A stretch of 64,000 bases of DNA, taken from contig JAWQFM010000007.1 in assembly GCA_033442325.1 (NCBI GenBank), forward strand, positions 2,165,638-2,229,637. Reading direction: 5' to 3'. The stretch's first letter is position 1. Every line of letters begins with the position of its first letter. The translations under genes were made by a program, and so were the position numbers. The notes beneath the pieces are model-generated. The model did not search any database. It had not been told where the DNA came from and was given only the letters and a program-made list of their open reading frames with translations. This stretch comes from Salpingoeca rosetta (taxonomy: Eukaryota > Protista > Choanoflagellata). Below are positions 1,372 to 11,695 of this stretch, piece by piece.

Positions 1372-1476
1372 GCGCACGTTCGCTTTGGGGAACATGGCGA
1401 GGGAGGTTGGCCATCGCAAGGGAATGTCGGAGGAGAATTGATGTCTTGTTTGCACGCCTGAAGACTCAACACACGT

Positions 1477-1510
<34 letters not shown>

Positions 1511-1951
1511 TATCGGCTTGTGCCACTGCCTCGTCCGCCATCGCAGGTTCACCAGCTGGCCCGACCACGGTGTGCCTGACGAGACGTGGCCTGTGCTTGA
1601 CTTTGTGGGCGCCGTTCGCAAGCACGCGAACCATTCGCACGACGCCGCGCCCATTGTTGTCCACTGTAGCGCAGGCATCGGCCGCACAGGTCCGACTTGT
1701 GCGTATGTGTGCATGTATGTATGTATGTGTGTGCACATGTTTTTCGATTGGGGCATGCACTGTTTTGCTACGTTGAGTCGTTTGATTGACGTCGTCATCA
1801 CACACACACACACACATGCACACGTGAGCAGGCACCTTCATGTGTTTGGACATCTGCATGCAAGAGTTGCAGAGCGAATGGCGGTGCGTTGTCTGTCGAC
1901 ACCGTCTGATCGCCAGTGCATGTACTGCTTCCCTGTAGCTCAAACGCGCCT

Positions 1952-2047
<96 letters not shown>

Positions 2048-3178
2048 CGAGTAACCTCTGATCACACGCACACACACACATACACGCACACACATGCCGT
2101 GTGATGATGGCACTGGCGTGCAGGGTGTGCGATGTGTTTGGCACCGTGTACCGCATGCGTCAGGAACGCGGTGGTGCTGTTCAGACAGGCGTCCAGTACA
2201 CATTCATCCACAAGGTCCACATGCCCATCTTGTTTCCGTGTGTGCCCCGTTGTATCTCCCTCCTTGCCCGCCCTGTTTCCTCTCAATCCCCAGCAGCCGG
2301 GATCTGTGCTCACACTGTGCTGGCTGTATCCCCCCGCCACTCTGCGTGGCCTTTGAATGCGCCCTGGACACCATGCGAGCAGGCGTTGTATGATTACGTC
2401 ACGCCTGGCCACCCAAAGTCCATGTTTGGAAGCAACATGCCAAGGTGTGCGTGTGTGCGCGTGTATTGTGTGCGTACGCGCACATGTGTGTGTTCATGCT
2501 TGACTGGTCGTCCATTCATCCTCCGCTCTTCTTCATACTGCATGCTTCTGCTGCTGCAATCCTCACCTCCGCCTCCGTCCATCACCACGCTCTCTCCTCT
2601 TCGTTCTCCCTTTGTTTCCTCTTCGTTCCTCTTCGTTCCTCCCTTCCCCCGGCTGCCAGGGACGTTGGGCTGATCAAGCCGTCTGGCGGCAGCTTTGGCT
2701 TCACCCTCCGCGGGTCCTGCCCGCCGTTTGTTGTCAAGCTCGACAAGCACGGCATCGCAAAGGCAAACGTACGCTCCTCTCCTTTATTTTGTGTGTGTGT
2801 GTGTGTGTGCGTGTGTGCGTGTGTGTGTGTCTATGTGTGTGTGCAGACGATCACGCTGGCTCAGATGCCGCCCCTGCGTCCAGTGCCATGGAACCACGCT
2901 CGTACCTTGCCCCTTTTTCTCTTCACTACACAGCACGCACGTGCACACATTAGCACACCATGTGCGCGTTCAACATCCACGCCCGCATATTGTTGAATCC
3001 TCACGCTGTGTCTTTTCGTTGCGTGCGGGTGTGGCAGGGCATCAAGCTTGCCGATCATTTGCTCGCCGTGAACCAGCAAGACACCAGCACAATGGAGCAC
3101 ACGCAGGTGGTGGAGCTGATCCGAAACTCAGGCGATGTCGTCACCCTCACCGTCATCTCAAAGGCCCCAATCGCATAG
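155..3178 (+). CDS. Classical protein tyrosine phosphatase with C-terminal PDZ domain (5' end lies outside the window; spliced)
   Basis: Exons at about 155-225, 498-592, 832-961, 1236-1336, 1547-1689, 1832-1883, 2124-2214, 2383-2444, 2660-2768 and 3038-3178 join in frame at GT-AG sites. PTP motifs: [55 protein letters not shown] motifs: GSFGFTLRG and [12 protein letters not shown]...HTQVVELIR. Confidence 0.93.
1954..2043. repeat. (CT)n microsatellite, intronic
   Basis: About 90-bp perfect dinucleotide run in a PTP intron. Confidence 0.95.
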
Positions 3179-3196
3179 CCCTATCGTGTCACTCCC

Positions 3197-3234
<38 letters not shown>

Positions 3235-3946
3235 TTTGTCTTTCACATGGGTTTGCTTGTGCGTTTACGTGTTCATTTGGCAGTTTGAATTTTTTCTTGT
3301 ATGTATGTTTGTTTGAGAGTTGCGCGCCTGTACCCCGCCATCGTGTGTGCTTCATCTTCGCTCTTATCTGGCTCGTTCAACAGACATGTTCTTGCTCTTG
3401 CACTTGGTTTACTCCGGCTTGCCGTGCTTGCTTGGTTGTATCGTTATCGGTGCATCCCACAAGATTCCGACCACGCCTTCTTGCTGTTTCCGCTGGGTTT
3501 TGCATGTGTTGTTCATCTCGTCGCCTGTTGCCGCGTTGCTTGTGTTATGTTACATTACACACATGACTGTCTCGTTCTCAGTACAAGGTATCGCCGACCT
3601 GGTGTCACGGGTCACCACTGTGACGTGTCTTTGAACGCCCTTGCACATATTGTACGTGAACCTGCAAGCCAAACAACGACCTCCTCCGTCAATACACGTG
3701 CGTGCACGCCCACGTTGGTTTTACGTGGCATGCCTGCAGCCACCGTTGTGCGAAACGGGCCCGCACACGTTTATCTGAATTCAAGCCCTTTTGTGGGCCT
3801 TTGCTGACCCCGCACGTAGTACCCATGCCGTTCGCCCCGGTATTTAAACGACTTACAACACGGGAGCAAAGTGCAATCAAATCAAATTTTCATTCGTAAG
3901 ACGTGGCGAATATTCGCTGGCGTTCATGGATTTCCGGTGGATGACG

Positions 3947-4058
<112 letters not shown>

Positions 4059-4213
4059 TGTGCACGCTATGTATGCGTGTGCATTATGTGCGCGTTGAAC
4101 GCGGCATTTTCTTTGTCCCTCTCAGACACAGCACGTCCCTCCTAGCTGTGTGACACGACAGCCCGATTTCGTCGACGGCGAGCGACCACACGACAACGCC
4201 CACGAAACCGACC

Positions 4214-7200
4214 ATGTCCATCCCGGCGGCCTTGCTTATGGAGGGCAGCCTCAAGGCGATCAGCGTCAGTGAGACATGTCCCACGCTCAGGTGAAGAAAG
4301 ATCCAACACAGAATTTGCCAGCTAACTTGATGTTCCGAGGTCTTTAGCCAGATCACCAGAGCATATGCAACCAGCTCAACTCGACTCGCACATGGCGATT
4401 GGCGCATGCATCGTAACTCGCCTCTTCCTTCCTGCTTACCTGACAAACGCTTCTCTGCCTCTTTCACCCTACTGCCACTGCCCAACCACACACATGAAGG
4501 CTGACCAGCCTTGAACCTGGATCCGAGGTGCGCTTGAAGCAAGCGCTGGCTCGAAACACAAGTTTGGTCGCCCTCATGTAAGTGGAGGCCATCAAGGCCT
4601 ATTGGCACATCACCAAGACACTCTGAACGCATTTGTCGCTGGTGTGTATATGTGTGCGTGCGCGTGCGTGCGTGCGAGTGCGTGTGTGTGGCTGATCAAC
4701 ATACCTACATATCTATGTGTGTGATGGTGCCTCTGCCTTGCAGAATTGAAACAGAAAGGCGGCTACCTGGGCTCGGAGCGGCGCTTGCTCACGCTCTGAT
4801 TTTCAACACCACACTTCAGACCCTCGAGTAAGCTGTGGGGCGTGTATTGCTTTGTGGATACCACTGTCTCTTGTAGTACATACCGCGTTTGGTCTTTCTG
4901 AACCATTTACCAAATCACACACACGCTCACATTCACACGATGTGGGGTCCACAGCATTACCGGTGCACACTGCGAAGGCAAGGCCGTTTCTCTGCTTGCT
5001 GAAACCCTCAAGAAGAACAGGAGCCTCACGTCTCTGCTGTCAGTACCACGCTCTCATACTGTTGTTTGTTGAGACAATGCACCTGAGGCATACACACACA
5101 CACGCACACACGCACACGCATACGTGAGTCAGTGCCTTTGCCTTGATTTCGTCCTACGTTTTGTTGGAGTCCAATCAAACGCCCTCACAAAGTCGTCATA
5201 CATCCGAATGGTTCTGTCTTCTCACCTTCACCAGGCTGAGAACCTGCGACTCAGATGGACTGCTTGCGCTCGCGGACGCCCTCACGCAAAATGATACGCT
5301 CAGCACTTTGACGTGAGCCTCGAGATGCGCGTGCGTGTTGGCTTGTATGTTGACGAGGAACAGCGTGTGCTGTTCTTGATGGCACGTGGTTTGCTTTCCT
5401 TGAAAGCACGGCCATTATTATCCTCCCTCCCTCCTCCACCGCCCTCTCTTCCTTTCCCCTTCTCCCATCTCTGCTTGGTTTAGCTCTGTGTTGTGTCTGC
5501 TCACGTGACTGTTGTGATGTGACTTACTGGCCGCGCTTGTGCAAATGCGTCTTCCCTGCAGACTCGGCGAAGGCATCATCAGCGAAGAGGCCGCACTCGC
5601 GTTTGCTCACACGATACAGGCAAACAAGGCCCTGACCGTCCTCAGGTACAAGTTTTGGCTGAGGGGCGTGCAGGGTTCCTGTGCGTGTTGCATTATGCAG
5701 TTCATGCCCGACCTTCCATTCCCCGACACTAAGCGTCCTGGCACAGCCACAATGTTTGTATGACGGGAACCTTTCATGGCACGGATAACTTCTCCAGCCT
5801 TTCAATCACTGTGACGACGGCCCAAAGCGCACACGCACTCATACGTGCTTGTCAAATGAATGACTCCCTGGAGCAGCTCATGTGAGTACAACAGGTTGCA
5901 CACCTGTCACCTGGCTTGCTTGTGATCACTTGGTCTGTTGTTGGTTCGCATCTGTTGGTGCACACATGCACACGTGCATGCAATATGCATACGAACACGT
6001 GTGCAAGCACTCACTCACTCACACACACACACACACTCTCTCTCTCATATGTACTTTGGGTTGCTGTCATGCACACACACACGTGCATGCCCGCCGCTCA
6101 CACTCCCAATCCCTTCATGTCCCCCGCACCATCACACCAATCACCACTCGCAGGCTATCCACGAGCATCTGTCACACTGCAAAACCAGGCGCGCTGGAGC
6201 AGCTTCTCAGGGACAACTCAACGCTGCAGCGCCTCGAGTATGTCAATACCACCCGACCAAATACACACATACACACACACACACCACACCACACCACACC
6301 ACACCACACCACACCACACACCACACCACACACACACACCCGTGCTGCGGATGGCTGTCGCAAGGGAACCACCCCCTCCGTGTAGACACATGCACACTGT
6401 TCATGCGGATGCATGCATTCTATGTAATCTCCATCAGGCTCGATAGCGTTGATTCGCGGGAGGCAAGTGCACTGGCCTCTGGACTGCGGAACAATGAGGT
6501 GCTGGAAAAGCTTGTTATCAAGAAGCAAGTGGGCGGCACGGACGGCAGCTGGGCACTCGCGCACATTCTTGTCAACAACATTGGACTCCAGACATTTGTG
6601 TAAGTTGATCGCGTGTATATGGTTGTCATCGAGTCGGGGAGGGTGGGAAAGGGGGGGGGGGGCGGCTCGTGTGTGCACGTAAGTCTGCCCCTGCGTTTGC
6701 GATCAACAATTGCACGAACAATTCGTCTTAGTGCCCCACCATAGGTGTGCACTCACATCCACATCTGCATGCCCTATCGTACACACACACACTTCCGCAC
6801 ACACACGCATTCACTCACACACACTCTCTCTCCTTCGCTTCCACTGCCGTTTGACCAATTGACAGGCTGGGCCATGACAACAGTGAGAACGGACAATCTT
6901 GGCCGCTCGCGCGCGCACTGCGAACCAATAGCACCCTCACCTCCCTCACGTAAAGATTTGTTTTGTTGTTGGCTGGTTGCCGTTGCTCCATTCAGCGTGA
7001 CGCACAGCGCTGATACTGCTGCTGCTGCTTTTGTTGCTCTTGTACAACCTTGTTACCTTTGTGCGCTTCGCAAACATGCATCATTCCTCACGCGCTCCGC
7101 CATTGATGCCACTCCACAATGCACACAAACATGATGCACTCACATTTACAATTGATGCGTACGCAGGCTATTTGGTCCAATCTTATCTGATGCAGCTTGT

Positions 7201-10200
7201 GCACTGGCGGGTGCGCTTGCCAGTAACACTTCTCTCCGATCGCTTGTGTAAGCAGCACATAGATACACCATCAACACACACGCCTGCACTCACCAATGTG
7301 TGCGGATGCAAGGCGCTGCCTGTGCTTATTTATCAGCCTTGCAGCCATGTTCCCAAACATAACACACGCACACACACGCACGCACACACACACACACGCA
7401 CGATCGTCACCGCATTCCTTGCTTGCTTTTCATTCTGCTGCCCAGGATCCTTGAAAATGAGCTGGACGAAGCAGGCGCATGGACACTAGCCAACGCCATC
7501 AAGAAGAACAAGTCGCTCCACAACGTTTCGTGAGTCGGCAGGCGTCCCTTGCACAAACTCTTTCATGCATCGTCGTTGAGTGTCATGCATACACATGCAC
7601 ACACACATACACACGCGCACGCACGCACAAACACAAGAGGCGACGCCTTGTCTTCACACCACTGTCATCTTAAACAAGCCTGACTGTGCTTGCTTGCTCG
7701 CTTGTTCGCTTGTTCGCTTGTTGCATGACGGACTAGATTGTCAAACGGAACTGTGGGCGACGCCGGCGCCAAAGCATTTGCAGGGGTCATTGCACACAAC
7801 ACGTCCCTGCAATACCTCGAGTACGTGTTCAGCTGCTTGATGAGGGCAGAGGCTGTGGGTTGAGAGGGAGGGGGGTGGGGTGGCAATCGCTCCCCATTGT
7901 GCGATCTGTTCCTGTGTGTTTTCCACGTTTCCACGCCAATTCGGTTCACTCAGAACACTGTCGATAGCTACTCACACTCACGTTACCTTGCCAACACCCA
8001 ACTGGGGGTTCTGTTTGCACTGCTACGATGGCTTGGCCCCTCCGCCCTCCCGAATGCTTCTCCTTGCATGTGCCCAGCCTCAGCAATAACGGCATCAGCG
8101 GCGAAGGCATTTTGGACATTGTTCACGCTCTGGCATGGAACACCCAGCTCATCACCCTTGAGTATGTACAGGGCATCACATCAGTCAACTTTTTGATGAT
8201 TTGATGTCACACCTTGCGTGATTAGCATGATGAGTCAAGCGTTGCGTGCGATAGTCATTTCTCTTACTGATGCGTGCCCATGGTGTAGTTTGACGGGGAA
8301 TGCAAATGACCGAGCACTGGGCGAAGAAGCCGCCAAGATGCTGTGTACCGTTCTGTAAGTTGTGTGTCTGCCTTGCCTTGGTCCAGAATGTACTCTGCAA
8401 CAGTTTCATACCATGGTGCACACGTCTGGGTCCCTGTGTTGCTCCTTGCCGAGTGCTGTTGAGCTTTCGCCCAAGGAGCAAGCGGTTGAGTGCTTGGGTG
8501 CTTGCTGGGGTGGGGACCCACGAATTGTTGCCCTGACTCGCTTTTCGTGCGACTTGTGTGCAGGTTCGATGGCGAAGCAAAGCTTGGATACAACATTCAA
8601 CGAATCACGCGCACTTCTTCCGTGCAAGTACGTGTGTTGTGTTGTGTGTTGGATGTGTGTGTGTGTGTGGATGTGAATGTGGGCGCTTTCGCAACGCACC
8701 GAATATTGCGTCGCGACGAGGAATCGCAAGTGCTTTCAAACCACAATCCCACATGCCACCTCTCTTGCATTTTCGTGTGAGGCTCTGTAGCACCGCTCTT
8801 CGTCGTCCTCAAGCAGCGACGTCGGCTCCATCAGCCGCGTGAGTGAACTGGAGACAAAACTTGACGCCATCAAACGCGAACTGTTCCACAAAGGTACAGA
8901 CTCACAGACATGAGGGAAGGTGCACAGGTGAATGTGACACCGGGACTTTTATCCCTCGCGCGCTACTTTACCCATTGCCCCTGTTGTGTATGTTGTGCAC
9001 ACCTGGCTGTTAGGCTCACAGCACTGCCTTTGCACTTGCATTACCGTGCCACGTTGTTCGCTGGTGTCCAGATGAAGAGATCAACGCGCTGCGCAGGCAG
9101 TTGCGGCGAGAGAAGCGCAGAAGCATGCCTCGATATGACGAGCGTGCCAACTGGAGGTCCCGCGAAGCGGAAGTTGGTGAGTGTGTTGGAAAAACCTGAC
9201 ACGTGTCCATGCGCGAGTGCTCGTGCACACACCGAAGCGCCCGCCTTTCTTGCTCGCTCAACGTCGCTCAACTGCGCACGTTCAGCGACCTGCACCCATA
9301 CACGCACAACATGTACAACGCACGCATGTGCGCACTCACACACTCACACAACACCCACCTACAACAAACACACGCACACCTGTGTGCACTAACACATGAC
9401 ACACAACGTGCACACACACACATTACGCACACACTCGCGCGCTCCATTGCGCCGTCGTGAATGCGCGCATGACAGAGGCACTGTTGCACTTGCGGATGGA
9501 CGTGTCGTTTGTGGACAACTGGCGCAGGGCAGAGGACATGCGCCACCGTCCCATCGTGGGTGCTGCGGGCAACCTGTTCAAGGGGACGTATGCTGGCCAG
9601 ATGGTGGCCCTGAAGCAAGTGCTGTTAGATCGCGCGCCGTCGCTGACAGCGCTGATCCAAGGCAAGCACAGCAACCGCAACCACAGCCTGTTGCTCGAGG
9701 TGAAGATCCTCCTCACCATGCGGCACCCGCATATTGTTCCGTTCTTGGGCCTGTGCTACGACCAAGCGGACCCCGGCGTGGTGTACCTCATGATGACCTG
9801 GGCCAGCGGCGGATCTCTGTACGAGTACCTGCACACCAGCAAGGCAGCGCCTTCCCGAGCAGAACGGAGTCGCATGCTGATGGAGATGGCGAGCGCAATG
9901 GAGTACTTGCATGCACACGGCGTTGTGCACCGCGACTTCAAGTCGCCCAACGTCTTGCTTACGGCCAGCTTGTCCACGCAGATTTGTGACTTTGGGCTGA
10001 GCAGCGTCAGCGAGCAGAGCTCGCACGTGTCTGCTCGCTTGGGTACGGAGCTCTGGGCCAGCCCCGAGCAGTTCGCCGGCGACCTCTTGACACGGGAGAC
10101 CGATGTGTTCTCCTTTGGCTGCGTCGCGTGGGAGATGGTGTTTGGGCTCCGGCCCTGGCATCACCTTGAGTTTATGACGCATCAGCGGCGTATCAAGTAC

Positions 10201-11695
10201 ATTGCCCACTGCTATGAGCGCCACGTGTTCATGGCCGTAGACAAGGAGATCAACGGACGCACCGCCTCTCCGGAGATGCAAGACATCATCTCGGGCTGCT
10301 TGCAGCCCATTGGCCAGCGTTATGACTTTGGGCAGCTGTACAAGGCGTTCTTGATCCAGTGGGAGGCTGCGAAGCAAGGCGGGCCCGTGAACCTGGACTT
10401 GCACGAGGAGATCCTGTTTGGCGCGGATGACGCCGTGTGGAAGCTGAGCCAGGACGTGGTTGACCAGATTGACACGCTTCTCGCGCCGCTACCTGATGCA
10501 CCGTCCACCCTTGTTGCTCCACTCAGGCTCTCGCTTGCCGAGCACCAGGAGCTCTTACATCAGGTGTCGTGTCGTGTGTGCGTGTGCATGTATGTGTGTG
10601 CGTTTGCGTGTGCGTTTGCGTTTGCGTGTGTGTATGTGTGTGCGTGTGCGTGTGTGCGTGTGCGTGTGTTGTGTGTGCGTGTGCGTGTGTGTGCGTGTGC
10701 GTGTGTTGTGTTGTTTGTTATCACTTGTGTTTGTGTCAGCGACTGCGAGTGACTGCTCGTGAGCAGTGAGGGACCTTTTCTTGTGCTGGTCAGTTTGTTC
10801 GTGGTGCATCTGTTGATACAGCCTCGATGTTTACATGAGGGCATGCCTTGTTCTTGCTCGTACACCCTTTCAGGTGCTGCGAAAGGCGCTGGCTGGGCCA
10901 CGATCCATGGATCCCGTCCTGAGCCGTCTCCGCGACGCTGCGTTGGTCATTTCTCACGTGAAGAATGCTGCGTTCAATGGCGCAGTCATGCGCAATCGCA
11001 TCATGGTGCGCTGCAAGTGCGACGGCCAACGGGAAGATCTGCCCCGCCCATTTCCGGTGCAAGACATGGCGTCGGAGCACCACAGCTCGCCACAGGAGAT
11101 TGCGCTGCTCAGCTACGCAACGATGCACCCGCACGCGCTGAACAGCCCGTACCACTTCCTCTGCGTCCCCTCCCCGAACGACGCGCTTCATGTGAACTTG
11201 CGCATCCAGCGCGCATTTTGTGGGCTGCCGTCGTTCGAGGCGGCAGTGGCCATTCTCAGTGGTGACATGAGCCACCTAGTGCCAAAAGATGGTGGCTGGA
11301 TGGGCCACGGGTTCTACGTGACACCTGACTTAGACTTTGCTCTGGAGTCGGCCGTGCCCATCGCTGTGAAGGACAGAGACCTGCCGCGTACTCTGGAGAG
11401 GTGGCGGCTGTCCCGCTTCCCCTGCTGCCAACTGGTGCTGCTGTGCGATGTGGTGTACACCAACCCCTTCCCGATGCTGTCGGAGGCGCAAGTTGACGGG
11501 GAGAAGCTGATGCCTGGACACGACGCCCACGTTGCTGTGGTAAACATGGCGACCAAACCGGCCAGCAACGCTCGGCCTTTCGCGTCGGTTGAGGATTGGC
11601 AAGCCGAGGGCGGTTGTCCGGCTGTGCAGCTCGTGTTGCATGACGGCGCTTCCGTTCTCCCGCACGCTCTGCTTGTGTTTGAACCAGGTCCTTGA
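4214..11695 (+). CDS. RNI/NLRC3-type LRR array + coiled coil + TKL-like protein kinase + C-terminal PARP/ADP-ribosyltransferase-like domain (spliced)
   Basis: ATG at 4214. About 14 LRR units, mostly in 84-nt phase-2 exons (4744-4827, 4955-5038, 5562-5645, 5798-5881, 6154-6237, 6866-6949, 7446-7529, 7737-7820, 8078-8161), with consensus ALAxALxxNxxLxxL. Coiled-coil exons at about 8790-9175. Kinase exon 9476-10563 (VALK, LLEVKIL, HRDFKSPNVLL, DFG, WASPE, DVFSFG). Last exon 10874-11695 is PARP-like (AFCG, GWMGHGFY, LVLLCDV, QLVLHDGASVLP). The junction near 8387-8563 is uncertain. Confidence 0.85.

Follow-up and report, generated by a model that had tools for sequence, protein, structure and literature searches.

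We analysed a stretch of 64,000 nt from the choanoflagellate Salpingoeca rosetta (the window; assembly GCA_033442325.1, contig JAWQFM010000007.1, positions 2,165,638 to 2,229,637 of the forward strand), in which positions 4214-11695 of the plus strand hold a single gene with 20 exons. Its predicted product carries N-terminal leucine-rich repeats (LRRs), a linker with a plausible coiled coil, a tyrosine kinase-like (TKL) Ser/Thr kinase and a C-terminal domain with the fold of the PARP-clade ADP-ribosyltransferases (ARTs), in which the catalytic residues have been replaced. A profile search led to the public S. rosetta protein XP_004995602.1 (EGD83238.1, UniRef F2U5M2; our label P0013), a "TKL protein kinase" of 1176 aa that is 100% identical to our translations of the kinase exon and the last exon and that maps back to the window at 100% identity. 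The coding sequence of 3531 nt runs from the ATG at 4214 to the stop codon at 11693-11695, with a G+C content of ~53-59% across the gene and introns of 101-310 nt. All 19 introns are GT-AG and, at each of them, exactly one GT-AG pair reproduces XP_004995602.1. This public protein was the query in all whole-protein searches, and neighbouring exons were joined only when splice boundaries were tested against it. A sequence-only reading of this DNA had proposed that LRRs, a coiled linker, a kinase and an ART-like fold are joined by in-phase splice sites into one polypeptide that lacks a NACHT domain; the public gene model has the same architecture, with every intron canonical and phase-compatible. 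The features of the gene, in window coordinates, are as follows.

4214-4290 (+), exon 1: residues 1-26, ATG at 4214, donor CAG/gtgaag
4500-4577 (+), exon 2: LRR 1, 78 nt
4744-4827 (+), exon 3: LRR 2, 84 nt, phase 2
4955-5038 (+), exon 4: LRR 3, 84 nt
5235-5312 (+), exon 5: LRR 4, 78 nt
5562-5645 (+), exon 6: LRR 5, 84 nt
5747-5881 (+), exon 7: LRR 6, 135 nt in the public model
6154-6237 (+), exon 8: LRR 7, 84 nt
6438-6599 (+), exon 9: LRRs 8 and 9, 162 nt
6866-6949 (+), exon 10: LRR 10, 84 nt
7167-7247 (+), exon 11: LRR 11, 81 nt
7446-7529 (+), exon 12: LRR 12, 84 nt
7737-7820 (+), exon 13: LRR 13, 84 nt
8078-8161 (+), exon 14: LRR 14, 84 nt
8289-8354 (+), exon 15: last, partial LRR, 66 nt; unspliced read-through meets an immediate TAA
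8564-8627 (+), exon 16: linker, 64 nt, without similarity to the paralog loci
8791-8893 (+), exon 17: Ser-rich stretch and first half of the putative coiled coil (heptad-like spacing, by eye)
9072-9176 (+), exon 18: second half of the putative coiled coil, basic
9476-10563 (+), exon 19: TKL Ser/Thr kinase and C-terminal extension (Pfam kinase domain ~9559-10308)
9604-9615 (+): kinase motif VALK
9928-9936 (+): kinase motif HRD, in a Ser/Thr-type HRD-x-K-x-x-N loop
9988-9996 (+): kinase motif DFG
10060-10068 (+): kinase motif SPE
10874-11695 (+), exon 20: putative PARP-fold pseudo-ART domain and stop codon
11219-11221 (+): Cys at the position of the NAD-binding His
11315-11317 (+): first pocket Tyr, kept
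11348-11350 (+): Ser at the position of the second pocket Tyr
11627-11629 (+): Gln at the position of the catalytic Glu

The junction between the kinase and the C-terminal domain (10563/10874) reads CAG/gt...cag/G in phase 0. It is colinear with two paralogs elsewhere in the genome, in which both domains lie in one uninterrupted frame (L005:124-2229, 702 aa, and L002:1501-3219, each with weak Pfam PARP matches), and with transcript-derived protein(s) of Microstomoeca roanoka. The two single-frame paralogs prove the fusion independently of splice prediction.

By itself, the last exon matches nothing in Pfam, among PDB sequences or in a word-index protein search, and its domain was resolved only after paralogs had been gathered from the genome itself. 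A profile of 21 copies placed only PARPs at the top of the PDB matches, weakly (PARP13 at 0.029, then PARP16). A search of 1.84 billion proteins returned 417 matches at E<=0.001 and, once the family profile had been enlarged with the short, distant relatives among them, it matched 35 distinct PARP chains in the PDB at E<=0.01, the best being PARP13/ZAP at 2.2e-8. The Pfam PARP family (PF00644), and no other, is matched by 25 of the 39 aligned family sequences (best 2.4e-14), with one relative exceeding the Pfam cutoff at 34 bits.

The modelled structure agrees with these profiles. An AlphaFold2 model computed from the 39-sequence alignment reached a mean predicted local distance difference test (pLDDT) of 83.8 and a predicted template modelling score (pTM) of 0.85, and replaced a first model from the 21 paralogs (pLDDT 56). 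In an all-against-all structure search of 48,161 representative chains, made without Foldseek, the top 17 matches are all eukaryotic PARP or pseudo-PARP domains (tankyrase, PARP10, RCD1, PARP15, PARP4, SRO1, PARP13, PARP1-3, TASOR and PARP16), with Z scores of 13.8-8.4 and root-mean-square deviations of 2.8-4.2 Å over 127-163 residues, and diphtheria-type toxins rank below them (Z at most 6.5). Foldseek returned 244 matches at E<=0.001, with PARPs in all of the matches listed. The C-terminal domain is thereby confirmed, on the strength of the model and the family profile, as a PARP-clade ADP-ribosyltransferase fold (the H-Y-E, diphtheria-toxin-like clade). The sequence-only reading had called it ART-like and had allowed that the last exon might prove to have no such similarity; a PARP fold was found instead.

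The PARP signature is present in the consensus of the family, with Phe-His-Gly in one strand, the motif Gly-x-Gly-x-Tyr-Phe, another Tyr 9-11 residues further along and a Glu that opens the last pair of strands. When the profiles are aligned, the motifs of the His and the first Tyr match up with those of PARP13 and PARP16, and the strand after the Glu aligns weakly with PARP13. We compared the 21 S. rosetta copies column by column at these positions. Nineteen of the 20 other copies read His, Tyr, Tyr or Phe, and Glu, the remaining one having Asp for Glu. The window copy alone reads Cys, Tyr, Ser and Gln. It keeps the first pocket Tyr, the adjoining Gly-x-Gly and a family-invariant His-Asp pair (in an HDAH stretch). 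Its terminal branch in the ART tree, at 1.47, is longer than that of any other S. rosetta copy (the median over all rows is 0.67), and its identity to the paralogs is the lowest in both domains (36% in the ART, where the others average 48-63%, and 39% in the kinase, where they average 43-58%). By these measures the window copy is the family's most divergent member in this genome.

Because the His, the second Tyr and the Glu have been lost, the ART domain of this protein is most likely a pseudo-PARP, probably inactive, and not an effector; the proposal of a "PARP-like effector" is not supported as it was worded. PARP13 and the SRO/RCD1 proteins also lack the His and count as inactive or non-canonical. 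In human PARP9, the His and the Glu are both missing (PMC2964712).

The kinase in exon 19 matches Pfam Pkinase at 3e-41. It keeps the catalytic Lys, the HRD Asp, the Asn, DFG and the (A/S)PE motif, with VALK, HRD and DFG verified as intact at the coordinates listed above, along with SPE. The atypical glycine loop that had been pointed out comes down to a missing first Gly, a trait of the whole family. Among solved structures, the best match is an EGFR chain (2.8e-29 over two summed stretches), followed by CTR1 (9e-28), DLK (1e-23), TAK1 (1.5e-22) and RAF (8e-21), with AMPK and MARK kinases in the same range. The presence of CTR1, DLK, TAK1 and RAF in this list fits the TKL group, and we predict from the retained motifs a catalytically competent Ser/Thr kinase of the MLK/Raf/TAK1-like type.

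Exons 2-15 (4500-8354) encode 15 ribonuclease inhibitor (RI)-type LRRs of ~28 residues, where about 14 had been counted before. All 14 exons are in phase 2, starting one base before a codon and ending two bases after one, and nine of them are exactly 84 nt long. A profile of the 15 repeats matched only RI-like LRR proteins in the PDB, which bears out the repeat type: LRRC34 (5e-15) and NOD2 (4e-8), further tropomodulin and leiomodin, DRC5, CARMIL, RNH1 (ribonuclease inhibitor) and, weakly, several NLRPs. Judged by these matches, this LRR class is common to ciliary and cytoskeletal proteins as much as to immune sensors. Because the repeats resemble LRRC34, tropomodulin and DRC5 at least as well as NOD/NLR proteins, the word "sensor" is used here as a conjecture. 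In XP_004995602.1 as a whole, Pfam LRR_6 reaches 22.9 bits, just short of its cutoff of 23.4, which the paralogs exceed; its best stretch is residues 392-413, from the end of exon 13 into exon 14. A profile made from the protein's own repeats detects 11 units in XP_004995602.1 and 0-2 in the paralog proteins.

Exon 7 departs from this regularity. With the acceptor of the public model (5746/5747), its first 17 codons interrupt the LRR period, while an in-phase alternative acceptor at 5797/5798 would yield a canonical 84-nt exon. The choice between 5747 and 5798 may reflect mis-annotation or alternative splicing.

Exons 16-18 form the linker, a Ser-rich stretch followed by ~35 residues (exons 17-18) with many charged residues and, read by eye, hydrophobic residues at a spacing of 3-4. 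The short coiled coil proposed earlier is plausible on this spacing, though not proven. We found no homologs of the N-terminal exon or of the linker exons in the paralog loci. A NACHT or Roc-COR domain hidden between the LRRs and the kinase was considered and rejected, as was a TIR, Death or CARD domain anywhere in XP_004995602.1; there is no Pfam match to any of them. No 19-residue Kyte-Doolittle window exceeds 1.6, the maximum lying inside the LRRs, in agreement with the earlier statement that no transmembrane segment was found. Because no membrane segment was detected, the protein is probably cytosolic.

We searched the S. rosetta assembly (55.4 Mb, 68 contigs) in six frames and found at least 22 further copies of the C-terminal domain at 32-41% identity. 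For the analysis we took 22 copies at 21 places, each with ~9 kb of upstream sequence; two of them are in tandem on contig C4, and some copies are loosely grouped on contigs C4, C11, C21, C23 and C26. The family kinase lies directly upstream at 17 of the 21 places, and an eighteenth (L020) has a weak kinase-like remnant. The combination of LRR_6, kinase and PARP-like domain occurs in the window gene and in five paralog models (P0001, P0005, P0006, P0007 and P0009, the last being XP_004990804.1), and LRR_6, Roc, COR-A, TIR and a PARP-like domain occur together in P0010 (PTSG_11903). In the domain orders predicted from these sequences, the family is a constant cassette of kinase (or Roc-COR) and PARP-like domain behind swappable repeat modules (LRR, ankyrin). 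It is missed by standard domain scans because the PARP-like domain scores below the Pfam threshold.

Several family members differ from this plan. PTSG_11903 (L019, G000:C4:885018-895017, minus strand) keeps H-Y-E and has no kinase, and is a ROCO protein with two NAD-linked effector-type domains. At L020 (G000:C25:881452-891451, minus strand, frame 1461-9998), a stop-free frame of 2846 aa without Pfam matches or internal repeats ends in the kinase-like remnant (1.3e-10 with our own hidden Markov model) and then the PARP-like domain; it looks like a giant family member whose N-terminal region is unmatched in Pfam. The tandem pair on contig C4 (L018, G000:C4:1048656-1058655) consists of two PARP-like domains ~2 kb apart, one with Asp at the catalytic Glu, with LRR exons upstream and no kinase detected. 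At L028 (G000:C29:415394-425393, frame 2233-6330), a frame of 1366 aa encodes a RING finger together with a zinc finger of the RZ type known from RNF213 and ZNFX1. A paralog with kinase and PARP-like domain follows ~1 kb downstream, and the frame may be part of the same gene or a neighbour.

Beyond S. rosetta, relatives with kinase and PARP-like domain occur in other choanoflagellates and in distant protists. A kinase like the family's is present in 38 of 158 proteins (the 150 matches listed and eight cluster members). In M. roanoka, ankyrin repeats precede kinase and PARP-like domain in P0015 and, with a long coiled coil, in P0023, and P0014 combines ankyrin repeats with the PARP-like domain, with no kinase detected. 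P0003 and P0004, ~70% identical to S. rosetta loci, have weak coiled-coil-type matches followed by kinase and PARP-like domain. Didymoeca costata has MORN-kinase-, TPR- and COR-containing forms; Paulinella combines SidE-PDE, kinase and a PARP domain above the Pfam cutoff; Apiculatamorpha has WD40, kinase and PARP-like domain; and a Logan assembly contig has a thioredoxin-like domain with the same cassette. Relatives also occur in Cryptomonas paramecium and in Tara metatranscriptomes. Among uncultured and distant protists, the kinase-PARP cassette is widespread.

Three of these relatives have further peculiarities. In the transcript-derived P0023, the kinase reads HRR for HRD, and so lacks the catalytic Asp, and the ART reads R-Y-E; degenerate members thus also arise in the sister species, with different losses. 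P0029 (Paulinella chromatophora) is the protein in which a SidE-type phosphodiesterase domain is fused to the kinase and PARP. P0123, from a Tara Oceans metatranscriptome (ERR1712137), has the permuted order kinase, PARP-like domain, LRRs.

The gene is annotated but uncharacterised, and its architecture newly combines known domains. Two surveys of the PARP family contain no kinase fusion (PMC2964712, PMC4245714), and a survey of choanoflagellate gene families does not mention a kinase-PARP or LRR-kinase-PARP architecture (PMC6040629). Searching the literature for the accessions and for these architectures returned nothing specific, within an incomplete coverage in which absence is not proof. 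The earlier impression that the architecture was unrecognised stands to the extent that no characterised protein or paper was found, but the gene was already annotated, it is one of a family that numbers at least 22 copies, and other protists have relatives of it.

We compared the protein with known systems. Human PARP13/ZAP, TASOR and plant RCD1/SRO1 likewise have a PARP-clade ART fold with the catalytic residues replaced. Their structural Z scores to the window domain are 13.1 (RCD1), 12.2 (SRO1), 12.1 (PARP13) and 11.1 (TASOR), and PARP13 is also the best sequence-profile match. Sequence identity to these pseudo-PARPs is 12-17%, and no orthology is implied. None of them has a kinase or LRR fusion, and their substitutions differ from the C-Y-Q seen here. 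The S. rosetta paralogs (for example, XP_004990804.1), with LRR_6 or ankyrin repeats, have the same cassette in the same order at 32-42% identity in kinase and ART, whereas they keep H-Y-E, some with weak Pfam PARP scores, and the window copy has C-Y-Q and more LRRs.

Among receptor-like systems, ROCO/LRRK proteins are similar in part: LRRK shares N-terminal LRRs and a TKL-type kinase, but the window protein has neither the Roc GTPase nor COR. The S. rosetta LRR-Roc-COR(-TIR)-PARP-like genes, such as PTSG_11903, have the same PARP-like C-terminal domain. In the choanoflagellate-specific Kinase TLRs/TIRs (Richter et al. 2018, PMC6040629), an LRR receptor portion is joined directly to a kinase and to a domain of the effector type; they carry a transmembrane segment, a TIR domain or both, unlike the window protein, which ends in a PARP fold. 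The NLRs of animals (NOD2, NLRC3, NLRPs) have RI-type LRRs in common with it, mostly with one repeat per exon, whereas the window protein lacks NACHT/NB-ARC, CARD, PYD and Death domains and carries its LRRs at the N terminus, not the C terminus. CTR1, DLK/MAP3K12, TAK1/MAP3K7 and RAF, which with E values of 1e-20 to 9e-28 belong to the closest solved kinase domains, have the HRD-x-K-x-x-N loop of Ser/Thr kinases in common with it; their flanking domains differ, and throughout the present family the glycine loop is without its first Gly.

We therefore favour, with a probability of about 0.62, a single protein of an expanded family in which an LRR solenoid, a coiled linker, a competent TKL kinase and a pseudo-PARP are combined. 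In such a protein, the solenoid would bind a ligand or partner, the coiled linker would mediate dimerisation and the kinase would be the sole enzymatic output. The dead PARP domain would serve as a regulatory or docking module; as with PARP13/ZAP, RCD1/SRO and TASOR, it could be autoinhibitory, bind an ADP-ribose-related ligand or partner with active paralogs. If this is correct, about 20 genes that couple a TKL kinase and a PARP-type domain to repeat modules as "sensors" would represent a lineage-specific receptor-effector design and would widen the known range of PARP architectures. The window copy would be a natural "dead-ART" variant, and a ready control for what the PARP-like domain contributes to the kinase.

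Several points weigh against this reading. Exon 20 alone has no Pfam or PDB sequence match, so its residues could be assigned only through the family alignment. What joins the LRR exons to the kinase exon is a gene prediction and three short linker exons that have no homologs in the paralogs. The loss of the His and Glu predicts, but does not prove, the loss of NAD binding, and some PARPs without the Glu are active mono-ARTs (PMC2964712). The role that we ascribe to the pseudo-PARP is purely conjectural.

A possible, though doubtful, alternative gives the protein the role of a pattern-recognition or defence receptor in the cytosol, with a logic like that of NLRs or ROCO proteins; such a role is compatible with a dead ART as decoy or regulatory partner. 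It would suit a family that counts at least 22 copies, some of them in loose groups on certain contigs, whose N-terminal modules are swapped (LRR_6 or ankyrin in this genome; WD40, TPR, MORN, thioredoxin-like and SidE-PDE across protists) and which includes an LRR-Roc-COR-TIR-PARP-like paralog. Choanoflagellates are known to fuse kinases directly to LRR/TIR receptors (PMC6040629), and the ART profile of the family finds its best sequence matches in PARP13 and PARP12, which are of the antiviral type. However, RI-type LRRs are also found in the ciliary and cytoskeletal LRRC34, DRC5, tropomodulin and CARMIL, which rank with or above NOD2, and the window protein itself has no NACHT, TIR, Death or CARD domain. 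Extending the same idea to the whole family, the kinase and PARP-like cassette would be the output module common to a large class of cytosolic receptors, undescribed so far and present in choanoflagellates and other protists, with LRR, ankyrin, WD40, TPR or Roc-COR-TIR front ends and an NLR/ROCO-like immune logic, and the C-Y-Q copy would be a dead decoy or regulatory partner of active H-Y-E paralogs; we consider this broader proposal unlikely.

It is quite unlikely that the C-terminal domain is an active ADP-ribosyltransferase effector, so that phosphorylation and ADP-ribosylation are both delivered after LRR sensing. The PARP-like fold, the retained first pocket Tyr, Gly-x-Gly and His-Asp pair, and the conservation of H-Y-E in 19 of 20 paralog copies, which makes the family probably enzymatic, are all in its favour, and PARPs without the Glu can still mono-ADP-ribosylate (PMC2964712). 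But the window copy lacks the His as well as the Glu, the pattern of human PARP9 (PMC2964712), has also lost the second Tyr, and has the most diverged ART domain of the family.

We regard as very unlikely a gene-model artefact in which the LRR exons are a separate LRR-only gene and the kinase and ART are encoded by a second gene starting from an ATG at 9469. Without splicing of intron 15, the LRR frame does end immediately at a TAA (8356-8358), an in-frame ATG (9469-9471) lies just upstream of the kinase exon, the acceptor at 9475/9476 has a weak pyrimidine tract and the three linker exons are without homologs. Against these stand the 19 canonical and phase-compatible introns, a distance of only 1.1 kb from the last LRR exon to the kinase exon, and the same order of LRR_6, kinase and ART-like domain in the five paralog models; moreover, the full-length, transcript-derived Microstomoeca kinase proteins P0015 and P0023 have ankyrin repeats before the kinase (and P0023 also the coiled coil). 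Finally, a paralog in decay that is turning into a pseudogene would account for the divergence of both domains and the lost ART residues, but is extremely improbable for a 3531-nt frame that crosses 20 exons without a stop or frameshift, with canonical splice sites and all kinase motifs intact.

Within the gene, the minus-strand open reading frames (ORFs) have no Pfam match and are taken as antisense shadows. Twelve of the 19 introns (4291-10873) hold CA/TG dinucleotide runs 8-16 nt long, or else longer degenerate tracts, and in-frame translation of them yields the long Cys-Val and His-Thr "ORFs" of mechanical ORF lists.

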